A stretch of 63,801 nucleotides of DNA, the filler included, from Olpidium bornovanus S191 (taxonomy: Eukaryota; Fungi; Olpidiomycota): NCBI GenBank assembly GCA_017911155.1. It is 28 parts of 28 records of this genome, joined end to end, with 100 filler letters (N's around TTAATTAATTAA, not from the genome) between each part and the next. Parts side by side here need not be neighbours in the genome. Positions count along the whole stretch, not along the records: positions 14,300 to 18,241 come from JAEFCI010008785.1; 27 more parts are not named here. One strand, written 5' to 3'. This document shows, piece after piece, positions 2,206 through 18,241 of this stretch. Below the pieces are notes generated by a model. That model was not told the DNA's origin, searched no databases, and saw nothing but the letters and a program-made list of their open reading frames with translations. The position numbers and the translations under genes are program-made. The first letter of the stretch is position 1, and every line of letters begins with the position of its first letter.

Positions 2206-2538
2206 CTCCACCTTTAGCCTTTCCTGCCGACAGCGTCCCCAAACTCCGCACCCGCTTCGGAGATGGCGAGTTTTGGAAGTGCACGTGACCTAAGCGCGAG
2301 TGGTTCTCGAAGGAAAAATGCTTACAGTCGCTGGACGGAATGGGAGTTAGAGAAGCTTGTGTCCCTTGTCCGGAACTCCCTGCGATAGGCGGCTTCTCCA
2401 CGGTGGAGGGAGATTGCTGCTCACTTCCCGAGATGATCCATAGATGGTGTTGTACATAAGTTCTACGCCCTGCAACCGGAAGTCAGGTCGCAAGTTAAAG
2501 TGAAATGGTCTGAACATGACACGCACCTTGCGACGCTG

Positions 2539-3414: not shown

Positions 3415-4485
3415 CCGGATCGCGTTTGCGTCGCCGGGAAAAGCTCAGGTCTTGCGGTCGAAGCGCGCGTGCGGCCTGAATTTTATTTTGCGGCGGAGCA
3501 ACGGCGCGCGAGTAAGTTGATTACCACCACCCCGCAACCACCTCCTCTCTACCGCGGGGCCCCTGGCACGGGCGGAAAATTTGTTATTTTCTTTTTGGCC
3601 GGAAGGGGGAGGATGGGATATTAGCGAGCGCAAATTTGTGTTTTTTCTTCAGAAACCGGCTACTGGACAGGAAATTCCGGCTCGCTTCCATTGCATCTAT
3701 AATAAAGGACATTTGGTTGCTCATGTGCTACACCAGGGTGAACGTCACTCCTTTAAGATATCTCCAGCACCTACGGAACAAGCGGCAAGGGCAACTCAGA
3801 TAGCAACCGGGCGCAAATATGGCGGCTGCGACAGTTTGATGCGGCAAAGACCTCGAAGCGGATTGAAGCCACCGTCGCTTCTACTAGCAGCGGGGGGCGG
3901 ACGTTGAGGGGCGCCGACGCCGCGTGAGGGGCAGTCGAGGAGGCAATGCCGCCAAACAAAGAAAGCGACGAAGATACCCCAACCAAATCCAGCGGCCCGT
4001 GCAATACGCACGGGCCGCTGATGCACGGCCGTTTCCACTTGTGACGCGGCATTGCCGACAAACGGGGCGCCCCCGCCTTCGGGGTACAGTTATTGACACT
4101 TAGATCCATCTACGCCTGTAAGCCTATTAGACGGTGTAGTATCATGTGACCCTTATTCCTGTTGGTCAAATACTATCGCATTGAACGAGCTATTATTAGT
4201 TGTGCGCCGAGAGTCAAGGAAGGCTGCCGCTGCAGCCGTTTGGCAATCCAGCCGCTGCGGGAACGGCCGGCGCCCTGTCACGGCCATCTTGGCCATCCAG
4301 GTGTTCGCGCCTTTCCGGAAGGCCGATCAGGAGGAGGCTACACGCCCCGAACAGCAAAAGACCATGTTCCAAACGGGGGACTAGCTTTTTGTCCCGGCGT
4401 TCGGAGCGCGGGTATTCAGGCGCCTGATTAAGGTTTGCGCGACTACGCTTGCCTCTGGCACAAGTCTTAATTAAAACGCTCGAGC

Positions 4486-5499: not shown

Positions 5500-7262
5500 C
5501 GGATCCACGCGGTCGCCGCCTCCGTCGCCACCTATGAGGGAGCTTCCGGAGCAGTGGAAAAGGCCGCGGCACTCCAGGGTGGTCCGCCGGAATACGTCTT
5601 CTGCTGCGCGGGTGAGGATCTGCGCTCCGCCGACGCGAGCACGGAGCCAACCGCCGCGCACGGGCGGAGGAGTGAGGAGGAGAAGTGGGGTTGGGAGGTG
5701 GGAGAGGCTGGCAAAAAGTTAGGACGAGGACGAGGACGAGAGACGAGGCTGCGGAATGAAGCTAACCAGACCGCGCACGGGCCGCCGCGCGACGATACGT
5801 TGCAGGCCTGGCGAGGCCGATGACCTTCCTGGATCAAACCGTGAAGAACTTCGAGGAGGTGATGCAGGTCAACTACTTCGGCTCCTTGTATACGATCAAG
5901 GTGCGAACCGGCCGTTTCGGTTCGCCTCTGCGATTGACGCCCGCCCGGGCACCTCAAAAGCCCGCGAGCGCGCCGGTGCGACCGGAGGATTCACGTGTTT
6001 TGGCCGTGCAGGCGGCGGTGCACAAGATGGTCGAACAGAACATTCGAGGGAGGGTTCTCGTTACTGGTTCGGTTGCGGGGTTCATGGGCATGTTCGGCTA
6101 CGCGGATTACGCCCCCACTAAGCACGCTCTGCGGGGTGAGATTTCTTTGTGCGCCCGTCCTCGCTTTGCTGGTGGGATGCCGTCGGGTAACTGCGCCAGA
6201 CATCGCTGACCGAGGGGCGCGCACGTGGGCGGAGCTGGGCGCCATCCTTGCAGGCCTGGCAGAGTGCTTGCGCAACGAGCTGCTGATGTACGGGATAAAG
6301 GTTCACTATTACGCGCCGAACACCATACTCTCGCCGGGATTCGAAGTAGAGGTGGGGCCATTTTTTTTTCGATACGCGCCCGGTCGGAATCCTCTCCGCT
6401 TTCCGAGAGGTACCAGCCGATTATCGGGACGCTCTCAACTTCGGCGGGAAAGCGGCGACCTCAATCTCAACGCCGTTGACGTTTCGTCCCCCAGCAACAA
6501 ACAAAGCCCCAGATCACAAAGGATTTTGAGGGCTCAGGTACCGTTTTTTGAGACACTGTTGACTTTTCAGTGCGGCATGCCACTATTTACAGTTGCCGGT
6601 GGTCGTTTTTGGGCGTCACGCGTGGACTTCCTGTGTTGTGCTGCAGACGGGATGACGCCAGACCAGTGCGCGGACGGTCTCCTCAAGGGTACGTGGCACG
6701 TAGCCGCTGTGCGAATTGACGAACGGGGCGGAGCTTTCAACAGTGGGATGTCGAAATACTTACTGTTGTACGCCGCTTCACGGTTCGGGATAATTCGTGC
6801 ACCGTCCAGGGCTTGGACGCAACGAATTCCTGATTACCACGGACATCGTCGGAGACGTTTTCCGATGCACCATGACCGGTGAGCGAACGGAGGACGAAAG
6901 GCCCGACCGCCTCAACGCACCAGCCGGGAAAGCCTTTACAAACAATTTCCCGCTCTCTTCGGTACCGTCGTTGGCCCTTTTTTCCCCGCGTTTTCTCCCA
7001 GGGTTATCCCCTCAGAATAATGTCATCGTAGACGCCGTTCTCGCTGCGGCCGCCTGGGTAAGTGTCGGCTTGGGGGGGGGGAAGGGGGTGGGAGACGCGG
7101 ATCAGCTTCCCGTTGTTCTGCGGTATGTAGGGCGCCTTGTAGCCCGCCAACTAGACGACTTTCCAGATCATTCTGGGTCCCGTCAGGATGTACATGGACC
7201 TCGTCGTGTGGAACGAGGGCAAGAGGCTCAGGGCGAAACGGCCGCAGAAGAAGGAGAGTTGA
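5500..7262 (+). CDS. TSC10: 3-ketodihydrosphingosine reductase (SDR family), 5'-partial, multi-exon
   Basis: Exons read RIHAVAASVATYEG..PEYVFCCAG / VMQVNYFGSLYTIK / VTGSVAGFMGMFGYADYAPTKHALRG (YxxxK) / LAECLRNELLMYGIKVHYYAPNTILSPGFEVE / MTPDQCADGLLKG / EFLITTDIVG / ..RAKRPQKKES*. The C-terminus is a KKxx ER-retrieval signal. GT-AG introns separate the exons. Confidence 0.88.
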
Positions 7263-8186
7263 CGATCGATTCCTCTTCTGGTCGCTTACGAAGCAAGATT
7301 CCGCAGTCTCCAGGAGTAGGTCGCTTGTAATGATATGTGCCGGGGGCGACTGTCATTGTGCTTCGGAGAGCACGCTTCCCTCCGCTAGGTTATTGGTTTG
7401 GCCGATCATGTACACCGGGCTGCTTGACTTCAGACTTTTGCGGTGGCGTCGGCACCCCACGCTTGGATCCACCGCGGGACTGACCTAATCTCGGTGTCAA
7501 ACGCACCCCCACGGCATCCGCGAAATCCCGCCGCACCCAACGAGCGAGAACTCTGAAGGTGACGGCTAAGGGGATCGCCAGGTTCAAGGGTTAAATTGAT
7601 GTCAGTGGCAAATAACCTGGGGGCTGCGTTTGTAACTGCTGGAGATTTACACATCAGCTCTGTGGCAGGAGTGGCGCAGAGGGTTCAAGCCGTCAGTGCT
7701 GCTCAGACCCCCGCGCAGACCAGCACCGGGCGGGGGGTGGCAAGCAGCAGCGGAATGTCGTGCCTTGGAAACAGGGGCCACGGAAGCGCGCTTACTGGCG
7801 GTCGTCAGGCCGAGGCGGCGCCGCCGCACCGCCGAGGAGCGATCGGCACCGCCTCGGAGGGAAAGGGGGAGGGAGTGGGGCGCGTGGGCCCGGGGGAGGA
7901 CCGGAGTGGGGTGCAAAGGAGTGGAGGAATCCACAAGAAACTTCCGGTTCGCTCCCCGATTCCCTTCCCGCCGTCCCCTGCGGAAGAGGCGTCGGAGACG
8001 GTCGCCGGCGGTGCGCGCGCAGTCGATTTTGGCACCCTCGTTGCGTTCGGCAGGAAGTCCGGGGTAGGACAGGTTTTTCGTCCGGAACTACGCTGCGCAA
8101 GGAAGCAGACCCTCCCCCCACGCCCCGCCCCCCTTCCTTCCCTGCCTCCCCTTCCGTCCCTTCTTTCCCTCCCCTTCCGCCGCACA

Positions 8187-10385: not shown

Positions 10386-11614
10386 TGAGATGGTCTGTTT
10401 CCATGANNNNNNNNNNNNNNNNNNNNNNNNNNNNNNNNNNNNNNNNNNNNTTAATTAATTAANNNNNNNNNNNNNNNNNNNNNNNNNNNNNNNNNNNNNN
10501 NNNNNNGCACAAACGCCCCCCCCCCCCCCCCCCCCCCGCCCCCCCCCCCCCCCCCAAAAAAAAAAAAAAAAAAAAAAAAAAAACAGATGTCCTCGTCCTT
10601 GCCGACGCATTCCCGACCCTGAGCGACCTTTCGTCCGCCACCGTGTCGAGCCTGATGGAGTGCTCTTTGGACCGTTCGACGGCGGAGAAGATTTCGACCT
10701 TCCTGTCGCAAGACTTCTCCGTGTGACCCGCGCCAGTAAATTATGCGGCTTCCCTCGCCCTCTTTTGAAGTCTCGCCGTCTGGTGCTCTTATCCCCCCCC
10801 CTTCCCCCCACCTACCACCCGCTTCTCGGCGCTGCTTCTGGTCGCGGCCGCGCGGCGCGCCCAGGACCGCGAGGTTTATCCGATTTGCTGCGTTTTCACT
10901 GCTTTATACGGATCGTTTTTTTCCCCCTGTGACTATCAGCCGTTCGGCTGTTTTTCTTTTTTTTTTAAAAAAAAAAAATAATTCGGGGTTGATGATGCGC
11001 CCCAACCTTCTCCCTGACAGACAACGATCAACGAAATTTGATGGCAGTACAGTATTCGCAATGCCATCATTGTTCAATCCGCGGCCTGTGTCGTTGTGTT
11101 CGTTGTCTACTGAGAGGGAGGGAATAGGGAAGGGGTTGGGGGGGGGGGGGGCTGCCCGCTCATCTGAGGCATATCGTCTTTTGAGAGGTGAACGGAAAAG
11201 CGGCGTAACACGCTCCGGGAGAAGAGTTGGGAGTGTGTTCTCGAAGACCCCCCCCCCCTCCCCACCACCCTGTGTACTTAGTTTGATCCCAGGACTCTGA
11301 TACAAGCGGCCCTGGACTATATGCTTCCGAACCGACCGGAGCGGGGACCTGGATTTGGCAAATTTTTCTCGTCCAAGGGGGGATCCTGAACACACGGACA
11401 TAAGTAGCTGGGCGGGGTGGAGGTGGGGAAAGGGGAGTTCCTTGAGTGTTCTGGGATGCAAAATTCCAATCAAATTTACTATCAGTAAAGCGTCAGACGC
11501 TGATTATACGTTTATGTTTGCTGCATCACAATGCTGCCAAATGCCCAGGGGAAAAAATTTTCATAAGCCACGCTTTAGAGTGGCCCGTAATTTTTGCCGG
11601 AAGAGAGAGAATGA

Positions 11615-11654
<40 letters not shown>

Positions 11655-11820
11655 GAGGGGGGGGGGGGGGGGCGGGGGGGGGGGGGGGGGGGGGGGGGGG
11701 GTTGGAAAAGGGAGGGAGGGAGAGACAGAGAGAGAGAGAGAGAAAGAGAGAAAGAGAGACAGAAAAAAAGCCGCGGCTAAATAAATACGGAACGCGAAAT
11801 TCGTGACGTTTTCTTTCGTT

Positions 11821-12517
11821 TCATCTCGGCCCGTGGGTCGGATGGCGCAGCGCCATCCGCACGCTGAACCCCCGAACTGTCATCTCGGGGGTCATCGCCA
11901 CCGGCTGCGAGCTCGCCGATCCCTCCGTTTTAACGTCGCCGGCCTGACCGCTCTTACACTCCTGGGAGGGGGCGGGCGCGTCCTCGAACGCCGCCCCGGC
12001 CGGAGCGGTGTCGGCCGGAGCAACCGGATCGAAGGAGAAGGCGGGCGACCAGCCCGCCACCCGCGCCTCGAGCTCGCGGACGGCCGCCTCGCCGAACCGG
12101 AACTCGTCGAACTGGTCAAACACGAACCGCCGGACGGGCAGCCGGAAGTGGAAAGCGCCGAACAGGCGCAGCGTCTCAAAGTACAGCGCCGGCTGTTGGA
12201 ACAGCTTCGGGTTCTCGTGTCTCGCCCTTCCGCGATTTCGTTTTTGCGTAAATCCAGTAAGTGGTCAGACATGCTGTTGTTATTTCGATGACGCTCGTGA
12301 CTGAGAAAACCTGGGTGTGCGTACCTGACCAAGGCCTTGGACGCCGCTGCGGCGAGTATGTGGTTGCTTAAATTGCCTATGGATGAGAGCACTTTGCATG
12401 CTCCGGCATCGAGCTTTTCTGTTCTTGACACCGTATCGCTGAAATCTGCTACTGATCGTGGCCGCAGGTTCGGCCATCCGGATATCTTCGTTACGGACGA
12501 GACGGGTGGTAAGGAAA
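11821..12517 (-). CDS. AVO3: TORC2 subunit Rictor/Avo3/Ste20, C-terminal exons
   Basis: KVLSSIGNLSNHILAAAASKALVR / HENPKLFQQPALYFETLRLFGAFHFRLPVRRFVFDQFD matches the Rictor C-terminal domain (NLSNHIL and FRLPVRRFI motifs). Confidence 0.85.
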
Positions 12518-12617
12518 NNNNNNNNNNNNNNNNNNNNNNNNNNNNNNNNNNNNNNNNNNNNTTAATTAATTAANNNNNNNNNNNNNNNNNNNNNNNNNNN
12601 NNNNNNNNNNNNNNNNN

Positions 12618-14199
12618 CATGCGCGTGTTTGTGCTCCTGGTGCCTTTGCTGTACGGGTCCGAGCAGGAGCTGATCAGGCGGACTGTGGACGACGGCGTCT
12701 GCGCGCTGATAGACGTCATCGCCGGCATCTCCAAGACCTCCAAACAGTTCGCGTCCGTCTACGCGGACGACGATCAACCGAACGTCGTCGCGGACGGAAG
12801 TCAACTTAGAACGTCCCAACCTGACATCCTCGCCAACGGCGACGTCGCGACGGACCTTCAACGGTTCGCGAACGAAGAAGGCCACCAAGAGGCGGCAAAA
12901 GGCGACACCGTAAAGATGAGGTTTCTCACGTTGGTCTCGCTGTACGTGAAATACGGCGGTTGCCTCACCGAAGCCCAGCTTGACAAATTGTTCGCGATCG
13001 CCTCCCGCGTCGCCCGAGACATGGCGAGCACGTCGTCCTGGCCGGGAACGCGGTGGTTTCGCGAATACGTCATCGGCACGGCCCTTGCTCTGAAAAATGA
13101 GAAAGAGGCGACTCTGGCCGTGTCCAGGGCTTTCAAGCAGCTCAGTGGCATGCTAAGGCAGCACGCGCGCGGGTTCGACTTTAGCCAATCGCTCTACGGG
13201 GTCACCGCCGCTGTCTTGGACTCAAGAAATTTTTTGCGCTGCGAGGAAACCAGCGTGCTCCTGCACGAAAGAATCATCAAGAGCGTGCTGGCCTTCATGA
13301 AAACGGAGACGGAAGAGGAACAGTGTGGACGGACAATGTACCCGGCGCTGGTCAAGCTCGTGGTGGCAGTCATGGAACGGTCCGACCGCGACGTGTACCA
13401 GGAGCTGGACAAATTGCCGAAGAGTCCCCGCGTCATGATGCACCTGATCCTCCCGATATGCTTCGAACTTAAGGTCAACCGGAACCCCGCGGTTTCGCGA
13501 GTCGAGCGGGCCGTGAACGAATTCTACTGGCACTGCCTGCTCTCTCACGTCCTGGAGCTCTGCAGGCTGCGGCCAAGCCGGCCCGCCGCGCTCCGAAGCG
13601 CCCGGAAGGCCAACGCGTCCACGGTTTTCGTTTCGGCGCGGACCAAGCTGCGCGACACGCTGACGCCCGGGCCGGGATCCCGGCGGGACACGCTTTTATT
13701 GGTCGCCGGCGACCGCGAGTCGCTTGTCGCCGGCGAACCGGAGGCGCTCACCGTGTACGACCCGGGGGACGCCGCCTCCTACCTGGCGGCCATAACGGCG
13801 ATTAAAGTGATACTGGTTCGCGCCGAACGCCTTATTACCTCTTGGAACATCTGGCCGCAGCTGGCACACCTGGTGAAACAGTCCATCTGCCACTTCGGAA
13901 ACGTCTTACGGAACGCGTCGATGGGAACGAAGGCCCTGGGCACGGCGCTCAGCTTCATCCTCTCCGCGGGAAAATACAAGTCGCACGGCAAAATGCAGCA
14001 GACCCTCCAGCCGGCGGATTACGCGACCTGGAGCATGCTGGAAATCATGGCCCACTATCCGATCCCGCTGGTCGCGTACATGAGAGGCCTCATACAAGAA
14101 AAGTTGGACGAGGCGGGGCCGATCACGCCGACTCTCGCTGGCGCGGGCGGCTGGGGCAGCAGCGTGGTGGACTTTCCCGACGGATCCGGGCCCCACGGC
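12618..14199 (+). CDS. UNC80-like alpha-solenoid protein, C-terminal region (partial at both ends)
   Basis: Frame open across the whole contig. AAITAIKVILVRAERL..WPQL and WSMLEIMAHYPIPLVAYMRGLIQEKL resemble metazoan UNC80 (ALKVILVCFERQL and WDFLDFIVRTRIPIFVLLRPFIQCKL, from memory). Confidence 0.65.
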
Positions 14200-14660
14200 N
14201 NNNNNNNNNNNNNNNNNNNNNNNNNNNNNNNNNNNNNNNNNNNTTAATTAATTAANNNNNNNNNNNNNNNNNNNNNNNNNNNNNNNNNNNNNNNNNNNNG
14301 CATGAAAAGCGGAACTGGCAGCAGGGAAAAGGTGACGCCGCGGGAACTGAACAAAATCGAGGGAAAAAGCCAAAAACGCTTTTGAGGGCAAAGTGAAGTT
14401 ATACCGCCAAGCTTCCACGCCAGAGGTTTTTGAAATACTGCGAATCTGGAAACACACTTGGGACGCCGAAAACTTAAACTGGACATGCGCTCCTTTCGCC
14501 GCCTGTTAATAACTAATGCGGGGCTCCGCTGGAGACCGTTCGGCAGCCGGTCCCGTTCTAGACGGTTCGACTCGGGCGAAGTCAAAAACGTTACTACAAA
14601 CAACATGAATCAGCACAAGTGGCTCCGAGTCGACCCGAGAAGCGCCCGTCCTGATAAGCG

Positions 14661-16971
14661 TCACAGCCTGCTGTCGAGCATCTTCCGAACGACAGCCGGC
14701 AGTTCTTCCAACATGTCCGACGCTTGCACCCCCCGACCAACCCTTTCGTAAGCCCGCCTGGACACCGCGCGGACGAGGTTGCATGCGCCGTAGGCGGCGA
14801 CCAGCGACGCAGGCTTTCCCGACCAGAGCCTCGGCATCTCTGCCGTCGCCTTCCCCGTCGTCTCCTTACCGTTGCTCTCTTCGTGCGTGCCCACCTGCTT
14901 TGCCGCCCGCACAGCCCACAGAAGCCAGACGGCCAAACAGCCCGTCAGCAAGTCTCCCTGCCCGCCGCAGCGTTTCAGGCCGCCAGGCTTGTCGCTCACG
15001 AAGACTGCAAGAAGCGCGCGGCGGCATACTGTTGTCAGGGACATGTTGTCCGGCTACGTTTATCCGTGGTTGTGCATCCACGCACCGTCTACGCCATTAG
15101 ATATGACGTCCACGTCGCCTTTCTCGACAACTGTCAGGCCGCCGAATGCTCTCGCCAACTTGGCGCTCATGGACGCTGCGGATCCTACGTTGCCACTGTC
15201 ACACTCGTCCACGTTCGCGTTGCCGCCGTCCTCGACCGCCAGATTCTGACAAATCCGAACAGATCCGCACTAGGGCTTGTGAGAGGTTGGCATAGATATT
15301 TCACGATGCGGGTAGAAAGAGGGAACGTACCACAGATTTGCACAGGCGGCCAAACTCGACAACATTTGGAGTGAGCACTGCGAGCCCATACCCCTTCACA
15401 AGCTCAGGGCGGTTGTGGACGAGAAACAGCGCATCCTGCGAACCACGTGCCAAAGCCATTCAGTTTGTGCTTTGACGGCCACGCTCAACCACGACTGCCG
15501 AACTCATTTCAAAAAATTATACCCCGTCCAAGACCAACAGCTTGTTATTCCTTTTTGCCACCTCGATGATTCGGCCGACGCACCGCATCGTGAGCTCGTC
15601 CCGGCCCAACCCCGGCCCAATGACGACCACGTCCATTCGGAACATCAGCCCTGACACCTGCCCGACCACGTTGTCCTCCGTCATCGGTCCGTGAACTTCA
15701 CCCCTAAATAAGCCAGTGCGGATGAGTGAGATGACGGTTTCTTGTCTAAAAAGTAGGCTTTCGTCCTGCCGCACAGACCAAGGCGGTGGACATTACGTTG
15801 TCGTGCTTGCGACGAGGTACGGGTAGACAATTACATCTGGACGCACTCATGAGTCACGATGCACCGTCTTCTCGTCAACTACGCACAGGTGCAATAATCA
15901 TCAACTCATACCTGGGGAATACGACTGCGGATGCTCGCATTAGCCGCAGACAATGAAATCCAAAGTCGACGCTTTCTTCTTGATTAGTAAATCGCCTTAC
16001 TTTGATGGCCGGTGCCGCGCTCCTCTCGCACACTACGTAGGCAAGGTCGGCGCCCTGCGGGGGGCAAAGTGGTATTACCCCAACCGAGTAAGCATAGAAA
16101 CGGAGGTCGGCTGGCGCATGTCGTTCAAAACGAAAAGATCTGCAACGTCCCACCGTGCGTAGAGCTGCCATGGCCGAGAAAAAAGGGGCTCCTGTATACC
16201 TAACACGTCGTCCCCCCCACAAAAAAAAAGGCAAAGAAGAAGCAAAGAAAATAGGGTGCGAGCGTCGCGGAAACTCTCGGACAAAGCCCACCCGGCGCCA
16301 CAACTATCGCTTCCAGGCGCAACCCGGGCGGGAAAACTCACATTTCAGCCCCTCCGATCACAAGCACTTTCCCTGAACGACGCGTGCAAAGCAGGTGGCG
16401 CCGTTGAGCGGCCGTGCGTTGGACAGCACGCCGGCCGGCCGCAGGCGCATTTCCGTACCGCATTCTCCCTTGCGCATTCCCGGCGTCAGCTTGACGACCG
16501 TCGACGCGAGCTCGCCATCCGCCGGGCGCAGCCGCGACGTCTTTTTCTGCAAATCCCCCATGCGCGCGCCTGCGCGTCCGGCTAAAAGGTCGCCCGGAAG
16601 ATGTCTTTTGTGGCGGATGTTTTTTTTTTCCCCCTTTGTGCGGGGCGAACTCTGGGGAACAGGCGAAGGCGAGGGAAAGGAAAAAAAAAAAAAAAAAAAA
16701 AAAAAAAATGAGTTTTCTGTCCACCGTCCGCCCGCTCCTCGCCCCAGCAACACGCTCGCTCCCCCGCCCCTTACGGCGGCCCAACGCGCTTACGCGCGGG
16801 GGTCCCGGGAGACTCCGCCTTGGCAACGGGCATCGTTCGCAGGAGCGCGTCCGCCACGTTTACCGCGGGCCGAAACGGCGCCAACTTCGCTAACCCCACC
16901 AACCCTTGCTGCGCGCGAGACGCGCGGTGGTCCCACGGACTCGCCAAACACGGGTTCATCGCGAAAGCCAA
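14661..16971 (-). CDS. NAXD: ATP-dependent NAD(P)H-hydrate dehydratase (YjeF C-terminal/CARKD family); 5' end uncertain
   Basis: Exons read [10 protein letters not shown] / [14 protein letters not shown] / [18 protein letters not shown] / SYSP / [16 protein letters not shown] / [12 protein letters not shown] / [10 protein letters not shown] / [36 protein letters not shown]. Confidence 0.92.
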
Positions 16972-17025
16972 ACCTCAGCAGCGGGGCAATTGGCAGCAAC
17001 TCCCTGTAGTGTGCTCGCGCGTCTT

Positions 17026-17526
17026 TGTCGGTGCTGCGAGCCGAAGGCGAAGCAGCGTCCGAGAATACGAGGCACGAGAGGCAGTTGAGCTAGCTATGAG
17101 TACTCACGCAGTAGGCTGGTATTTCTTCAAGAGAGCACTCATACCACGGCGAGCCTAAACGCCGCGGATGCTTCCGCGTCAATCCACCACGGTGCACTAC
17201 CTACGTGCGCCCAACAAATTGGGATTCGAACCCAAACCGTGATGAACTGATGAGGCTCCACTCATGATCACATTGATCATGATGCTCGTGCCTTTCGACA
17301 ACGAGACAGTCAAATCATCCCTCTTGCGAGAGGACTATGCACATCTTCCGATGTGGGCGGGCGGGTGGGTCATAGCTAGCTCAACTGCCTCTCGTACCTC
17401 GTATCCTCGGGCGCTGCTTCGCCTTAGGCTCGTAGCGCCGACAGGATACTACGGTAAACGAGGCAGTCCTCGTTAGCTGCTTTCACAGCAAACGGAGTTA
17501 GCTACCCTCTGCGGATTTCTCCGCAG
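17026..17526 (-). ncRNA. Unclassified highly structured element (candidate ncRNA, or non-autonomous element with long inverted repeats)
   Basis: 74-bp inverted repeat 17026-17099 / 17370-17443 (68/74 identical). Minus-strand hairpins are capped by GAAA, GAAA, GGAA, GCAA and GAAA, and there is a GGGUUCGAAUCCC T-loop arm. Confidence 0.55.
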
Positions 17527-17739
17527 TGCCAGAGACCATGTCCACATGGATTAGAGTCGGACGAAGCACGACATGTTCACAACACCGCATATCGTAATAA
17601 CGGAGCATTGTTGTTGGATAATCCCAACGATTAGCGGCCGTAACCGCTGGATCCTTTCCAGCATCCAATTGCGCAGTCGTGATGCTTTTGATCAGCACGT
17701 ACGGTGTGATCTTGGTCCTCGGGTAACCAAGTGTGGTCA

Positions 17740-18241
17740 TGTAATCCTTGATCCAGAATCGGTTGTTGCTTGTTCTGGCGTATGCGCATCCTTTGCGAGA
17801 CATGTCACGAGGAGAGTAGGTACCACTTTCCACGGAGCGCGAGCTGCCCAAGCCTGGTATACAGTGACAATGTCCGCTTTCGGGTCAACGGAAAGGTGTT
17901 CGCATACCAATGGTTGTACCTTTATTGCCGTCCGGCAATCCAATGTCTCTCCCGCTTCTTTCGGGGCAAAAACCGTGCCAGTGAACTGCGCATTGGTCCA
18001 TTGGACTTGTCTGCCAATCCGCGTCAAGCATGACGGTCTTCGTTTCGAGCCTAATGTCAATAAGGTACACAGCTTTCCAGCAAGTGAACAAAGCGTCAAT
18101 TTTTCATTTCACGGCCCGCGAATCATTCCGGCAATCACATCCTCTTCCAGGACGATTACTGAATCCGTTGATTTGGTTGCCGGCGCACCGTCCTCCACCT
18201 GCACTTCCAACATTTTCTCGGTGGCTTCTTCGCGCAATGCC
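17740..18241 (-). mobile_element. Possible degenerate retroelement gag/protease relic
   Basis: Stop-interrupted frame ..GKLCTLLTLGS.. ..VDPKADIVTVYQAW.. loosely follows the retropepsin layout (the DSG position reads TLG). Weak. Confidence 0.25.

Follow-up and report, generated by a model that had tools for sequence, protein, structure and literature searches.

A probable DIRS1-like retrotransposon end, old and decayed, upstream of NAXD in Olpidium bornovanus

The NAXD contig and its inverted repeat

Positions 14300-18241 of the window (the whole stretch of 63,801 nucleotides analysed here, along which positions are counted unless another element is named) correspond to all 3942 bp of contig JAEFCI010008785.1 from assembly GCA_017911155.1. 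The JAEFCI01 series belongs to Olpidium bornovanus and was obtained from DNA of non-axenic zoospores (PMC7865070); another protein of GCA_017911155.1 carries the NCBI label Olpidium bornovanus. The exons of NAXD are encoded on the minus strand of the contig and are the sole detection when the local ORFs are searched with Pfam. A DIRS-like relic, composed of a broken tyrosine recombinase (YR) gene and a long inverted repeat, shares the orientation of NAXD and is located about 0.5 kb upstream of it (Table 1). The original prediction had likewise placed its element upstream of NAXD on the same strand and 3′ of a possible retroelement relic. The interval between the end of the transposon and NAXD (16620-16708) contains another inverted repeat, 18 nt long, made up of a T10C5 run and an A-run of about 33 nt.

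The two arms of the long inverted repeat (17026-17099 and 17370-17443) are 74 nt long, separated by 270 nt and complementary at 68 of 74 positions (92%). Their six mismatches comprise five transitions and one transversion, and the similarity ends sharply at all four edges. These values reproduce the earlier description of the repeat in full. Comparison of the sequences flanking the two arms (17006-17025 versus 17444-17463) showed that they are unrelated, i.e., the repeat is not framed by a target-site duplication. A typical MITE, already doubted in the original prediction, was rejected on this basis.

Table 1. Features of the window copy and their counterparts in related elements (YR, tyrosine recombinase; ICR stands for internal complementary region and ITR for inverted terminal repeat; l and r, left and right)
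Feature	Window position	Strand	Basis or remark	L010	L009
NAXD exons	about 14660 to 16500	minus	Pfam Carb_kinase		
Distal repeat arm (right terminus, outer end)	17026..17099	minus	complementary to rICR	1466-1540	11633-11711
Right extension, putative	17026-17061	minus	about 36 nt; palindrome offset		
Divergent ITR part, putative	about 17062-17087	minus	in distal arm		
Boundary motif, direct, inner edge of distal arm	17088-17098	minus	recurrent motif	1469-1488	
Conserved part of rITR, probable	17100..17255	minus	metagenome contig, published layout		
Segment between rICR and terminal repeat	17256..17369	minus	C-rich motif, then four consecutive hairpins		
9-bp hairpin	17262-17282	minus	seen in both predicted folds		
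GNRA hairpins	17285-17305, 17319-17332, 17340-17355	minus	between rICR and terminal repeat		
C-rich motif	17358-17369		CCCACCCNCCCG	1118-1131	
rICR = proximal arm	17370..17443	minus	inverted motif at 3′ edge	1043-1117	10744-10822
Boundary motif, inverted, inner edge of proximal arm (rICR 3′ edge)	17371-17384			1100-1117	
lICR, putative	17444..17505	minus	62 nt; palindrome, boundary motif, L010 equivalent	981-1042	
GNRA hairpin	17476-17489	minus	in lICR		
Boundary motif at recombinase stop, lICR 5′ edge	17494-17505			981-1000	
YR stop codon	17498-17500	minus	natural stop	1007	10705
DIRS-type YR, catalytic-domain remnant	17501..18240	minus	translations, HMMER homologues, alignment		
GAAA-capped 7-bp hairpin	17509..17526	minus	within last codons of recombinase ORF		
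Arm length and complementarity	74 nt, 92%			75 nt, 88%	79 nt, 92%
Spacer between arms	270 nt			348 nt	810 nt
CACCAAGCTAGTTCAACC-family 18-nt motif or its inverse			L002, 1649-1662 and 1778-1791; L003, about 3850-3890; L004, 4640-4658; L012, about 2230-2250		10808-10827

A divergent recombinase and its relatives

The recombinase remnant consists of about 240 aa read from two minus-strand frames (18240-17501), which together span the entire length of a homologue family of about 240 aa. The gene is interrupted by an in-frame TGA (18109-18111) and by a frameshift near 17765, and its N-terminal domain is missing, the gene being cut by the contig end (18241). The proximal arm of the inverted repeat lies on the same strand, 57 nt past the end of the recombinase remnant. 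Since the arms differ by 8% and the recombinase gene is broken, this copy is an old and inactive insertion.

An exhaustive HMMER search retrieved nine related proteins among 1.8 billion representatives. One of them, P0001 (767 aa), is the public gene model of JAEFCI010008785.1 (14660-18240, minus strand), in which the broken recombinase is spliced onto NAXD (Carb_kinase) by a model that bypasses the in-frame stop and crosses the region of the ICRs (internal complementary regions) and terminal repeat. This fusion looks like an annotation artefact, and the locus exposes an apparent error of public annotation in which a transposon relic has been joined to NAXD. The other HMMER matches are 234-322 aa long and show 40-49% identity.

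A language-model feature search of a protein atlas led to Phage_integrase and tyrosine recombinases, and the ESM Atlas model of the homologue P0002 matches Phage_integrase clusters with a TM score of 0.74, so that a YR fold is supported for this homologue at the level of a predicted structure. The Pfam Phage_integrase model did not match the recombinase, and a profile search of PDB sequences returned nothing relevant; the AF2 model of the recombinase, built from an alignment of seven sequences, was too poor for a fold search (pLDDT 41.6). At box II, where H..R is expected, TPY.LIKS is present in all eight homologues and in the window remnant (17600-17640, minus strand), and the later catalytic positions of the family read RW and RHY. 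The conservation of TPY.LIKS points to a possibly unusual version of the active site, and this odd box II may also explain why Pfam fails to detect the domain.

No reverse transcriptase (RT) was detected within the contig (14300-18241). In the related elements L003 and L004-L008, the recombinase ORF is located directly behind an ORF of 761-771 aa that matches both RVT_1 and a Dam-like methyltransferase. L002 and L009 also have a Dam-like match, and both are counted among the elements with an RVT_1 ORF directly before the recombinase ORF; L009 encodes in addition an N-terminal recombinase domain, and one of its ORFs is RNase H-like. The Dam-like matches in four elements (L002, L003, L004 and L009) have E-values from 1.5e-5 to 7e-4 and all lie under the Pfam cut-off (19.7-25.1 bits versus 28.1). 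The succession of RT, RNase H, methyltransferase and recombinase is the gene order of DIRS1-like (and PAT-like) elements (PMC3266345, PMC3783388). By comparison with these relatives, the window copy probably once had an RT upstream of its recombinase.

The arrangement behind the recombinase gene is also shared. L010 (a second Olpidium contig from the same assembly) and L009 (from GCA_025602905.1) both display an arm-spacer-arm structure right after the YR stop codon, with the proximal arm beginning 36-39 nt past the stop, and neither has any DNA similarity to the window outside of the coding part. This geometry bears on the possibility that the locus contains an independent DNA transposon of the foldback or MITE-like type, 418 bp long and bounded by terminal inverted repeats of 74 bp, lying beside the recombinase relic by chance. 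The unit does resemble such elements in that long terminal inverted repeats enclose a short non-coding core, part of which recurs in another sample, but it has no target-site duplication, its flanks being unrelated, and the same structure is fixed directly past a homologous recombinase ORF in elements otherwise unrelated in sequence. Moreover, part of the repeat system lies outside of the 418 bp, with a copy of the boundary motif at the recombinase stop codon (17494-17505), as in L010. We therefore consider a chance neighbour of this kind very improbable. The inverted repeat belongs to the adjoining retroelement, which bears out the link to a mobile element suggested in the original prediction.

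The tyrosine recombinase alone would also be compatible with Cryptons, the YR DNA transposons of eukaryotes. However, Cryptons have no RT, RNase H, methyltransferase or ICR/terminal-repeat system, whereas the relatives of the window recombinase follow ORFs for RT and methyltransferase.

A word-index protein search yielded seven family members, all on contigs shorter than 5 kb, and no full-length element with two ends among them. The short-read contigs of the relatives stop 90-185 nt past the YR stop codon, and that of L004 stops exactly at the inverted boundary motif; contig breaks are expected at this place because assemblies meet such repeats there. In L009, no left inverted terminal repeat (ITR) was found within 20 kb. 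The L009 region seems to be a transposon nest with a 5′-truncated DIRS copy, and the left ITR has probably been lost through truncation by other insertions. By eye, translations of L009 contain a MULE-like transposase ORF upstream of the DIRS-like copy (6418-7776, minus strand) and a Tc1/mariner-like transposase just past its right end (12252-13229, plus strand).

Probable internal complementary regions and right terminus

We interpret the region, with a probability of about 0.85, as belonging to a DIRS1-like tyrosine-recombinase retrotransposon that has decayed; it would form the 3′ end of this element, whose sense strand is the minus strand of the window. In this reading, the two arms of the 74-bp inverted repeat correspond to the right ICR (rICR) and to the outer end of the right terminus, with which it pairs. 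Read in the sense direction, the broken recombinase would be followed by the left ICR (lICR, 17505 to 17444) and the rICR (17443 to 17370), then by a short hairpin-rich segment, the right ITR (rITR) and a right extension ending at 17026. In place of the unclassified stand-alone element initially proposed (a new ribozyme, a large non-coding RNA or a viroid-like element), the locus thus most probably contains the ICRs and terminus of a DIRS1-like element (PMC3266345, PMC7192593), which removes a false lead: the structure would represent no new class of ribozyme or non-coding RNA but a known one of DIRS elements.

[quoted passage not shown] The lengths proposed here are 62 nt for the left ICR (published range 36-110 nt), 74 nt for the right ICR (36-88 nt), about 36 nt for the right extension (9-75 nt) and about 170 nt for the terminal repeat (66-316 nt; PMC3266345), the extents of the lICR and of the conserved terminal repeat being putative. 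The summed length of both ICRs, 136 nt, is slightly over the published 85-130 nt.

The element resembles DIRS1-like retrotransposons (DIRS-1 of Dictyostelium and, among fungi, RoDIRS1, AmDIRS1/2 and MciDIRS1; PMC3266345, PMC7192593, PMC3783388) in several respects: a coding part with the YR gene at its 3′ end; an RT and a Dam-like methyltransferase upstream, in the relatives; a putative left and a right ICR, adjoining each other past the recombinase gene; complementarity of the right ICR to the right terminus at its outer end, right extension included; a short boundary motif common to the ICRs and the terminus; and the absence of a target-site duplication. This likeness is that of a right end alone, the window copy being known without its left terminus or gag/pol part. 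The host, an early-branching fungus, is a further point in common with the known fungal DIRS elements. The window element differs from them by the sum of its ICRs, by a recombinase that escapes Pfam and by the odd box II, and the window copy by an additional cluster of GNRA hairpins. No report of DIRS elements in Olpidium was found in the cited literature. The lineage documented by the present data, DIRS1-like but divergent, occurs in Olpidium, which stands at the transition from flagellated to terrestrial fungi, as well as in a small number of other samples.

PAT-like and Ngaro elements likewise combine a tyrosine recombinase with an RT, and PAT-like elements also have a methyltransferase, but both groups possess split direct repeats in the order A1-B1-A2-B2, whereas the window element has inverted repeats. 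Beyond A-runs and 14-mers, no direct repeats were detected in the piece, and no A1-B1-A2-B2 order was seen; these two groups were rejected for want of the split direct repeats.

The edges of the ICRs and of the terminus are marked by a boundary motif of 11-18 nt, with the core AGCTAGCT in the window and an 18-mer in the relatives. It occupies three equivalent places in both Olpidium elements. One copy, diverged in the window, is at the recombinase stop codon and opens the lICR; a second lies inverted at the rICR's 3′ edge; the third, in direct orientation, is at the inner edge of the distal arm. The motif is also found past the stop codon in L002, L003, L004, L009 and L012. These 18-nt copies mark ICR edges in elements that come from various samples and genomes and share no other non-coding similarity. 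A scan of JGI metagenomes with the 18-nt motif gave one match (L013), located outside of any recombinase context and probably due to chance. Its recurrence makes the 18-nt motif a candidate cis-acting site, at the level of sequence comparison, for DIRS replication.

The putative lICR would be the reverse complement of the element's left terminus. An imperfect palindrome spans the lICR and rICR together (z = -5.9 for the DNA fold), and its centre lies about 18 nt inside the rICR. Such an offset is predicted by a right extension of about 36 nt (36-42), and the same offset geometry is present in L009 (palindrome 10713-10816 versus arm 10744-10822). The counterpart of the lICR in L010 has the same length, 62 nt, and a segment of the lICR (17444-17466) resembles the divergent part of the terminal repeat (17062-17084). 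In both Olpidium elements the C-rich motif follows directly past the rICR.

The conserved part of the rITR is suggested by a 176-nt contig from an unrelated metagenome run, which matches 17088-17255 only, with about 93% identity. This contig has a 6-nt insertion (GTACCC) right after 17099, exactly where the distal arm meets the core, and five substitutions within 17169-17220. The location of 17100-17255 also agrees with the succession described for DIRS1-like ends, in which the conserved ITR is followed by the boundary motif, the divergent ITR part and the right extension (PMC3266345). A match running from the boundary motif inward would fit a conserved ITR that behaves as a repeat-bounded unit. 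A scan of JGI metagenomes with a 25-mer of the terminal repeat gave 0 matches.

In Dictyostelium DIRS-1, the ICR of 88 bp (33 + 55) is essential for retrotransposition (PMC7192593). By analogy with the mechanism established for this element, from which we infer the entire replication process here, the transcript of the Olpidium element would not include the outermost stretch of either terminal repeat. Single-stranded cDNA made from it by reverse transcription would anneal to the ICR, and with the ICR as template the two ends would be restored and joined in a circular junction. Integration by the recombinase would follow, leaving no target-site duplication.

Hairpins on the sense strand

The five GNRA hairpins described in the original prediction are all present on the minus strand, i.e., the sense strand of the element, and the 9-bp hairpin near the terminal repeat was likewise recovered. 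Among 300 dinucleotide shuffles, which average 0.34 such hairpins, there is no case of five, and the plus strand has one; the pattern itself was chosen post hoc. The enrichment is real in the window copy and is not foreseen by the DIRS model. The hairpin 17509-17526 and the further hairpins that had been followed up to about 17700 are located within the protein-coding remnant.

Shuffle tests also confirmed that the structure is not random. The z-score of -13 obtained for the folding of the whole region is almost all due to the long inverted repeat; the 270-nt core by itself gives z = -2.5 on the minus strand and -2.35 on the plus strand. The cluster of hairpins between the rICR and the terminal repeat (114 nt, 17256-17369) has a z-score of -2.9, and 0 of 200 shuffles fold as well.

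Neither property was recovered in the relatives. The corresponding regions of L010, L009, L002 and L004 show no enrichment of GNRA hairpins on the sense strand; the spacer of L010, the sister element from the same genome, contains no sense-strand GNRA hairpin and folds no better than its shuffles (z = +0.3). A separate functional RNA, of which the five loops were initially taken as the signature, is unsupported because the GNRA hairpins and the excess of folding are not seen in these relatives. A search of sequencing runs for the region returned one metagenome run and no RNA run.

One may still ask whether the sense-strand module with its five GNRA loops (about 17256-17526) acts as a functional folded RNA of the retrotransposon, in addition to its role as ICR and terminal repeat. 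Its enrichment on the sense strand only and the stability of the hairpin cluster relative to shuffles would be consistent with such a function. [quoted passage not shown] By analogy, the hairpin segment would be located near the 3′ end of the transcript, and a role in priming or in the recruitment of RT is conceivable for it. However, the GNRA enrichment is not shared by L010, L009, L002 or L004, the L010 spacer shows no excess of folding, this copy is dead, and the pattern was selected after the fact, so that we regard such a function as unlikely. The more specific proposal that the module is the 3′ end of a subgenomic transcript, which would recruit RT or self-prime the first strand, is similarly doubtful. 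The same low probability applies to a broader version, in which the hairpin module and the boundary motif shared across species would form a cis-acting RNA or DNA signal of DIRS replication, with the motif as a recognition site for end-joining or recombination.

The dense hairpins, a CUGAUGAG string on the plus strand and a tRNA T-arm-like hairpin on the minus strand could point to a novel ribozyme, to an RNA of the viroid or retrozyme type or to some other known class of structured RNA. Permissive searches of both strands against Rfam 15 gave no match above noise: the best one, mir-995 (24.6 bits versus a gathering score of 72; E = 0.11), corresponds to a hairpin (17382-17469) that is the ICR palindrome itself, and all others have E-values of at least 1. 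This agrees with the original prediction, which could fit the region to no tRNA, SRP, RNase P/MRP, snRNA, hammerhead or canonical group I/II intron. Combined with the lack of conservation of the structure in the relatives, the Rfam result makes an RNA of this kind very improbable. For the hammerhead ribozyme in particular, the CUGAUGAG string is present without a matching core, and no Rfam match appeared even at E-values up to 10.

A tRNA was rejected as well: ARAGORN predicted 0 tRNA or tmRNA genes, and neither a cloverleaf nor a permuted tRNA could be built by eye, nor could a primer-binding site with a CCA complement. The T-arm-like hairpin itself is located inside the putative rITR (17219-17235, minus strand) and has a perfect 5-bp stem closed by the loop TTCGAAT. 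It fits the consensus of the Pol III box B, and L010 has GTTCGA at a comparable place.
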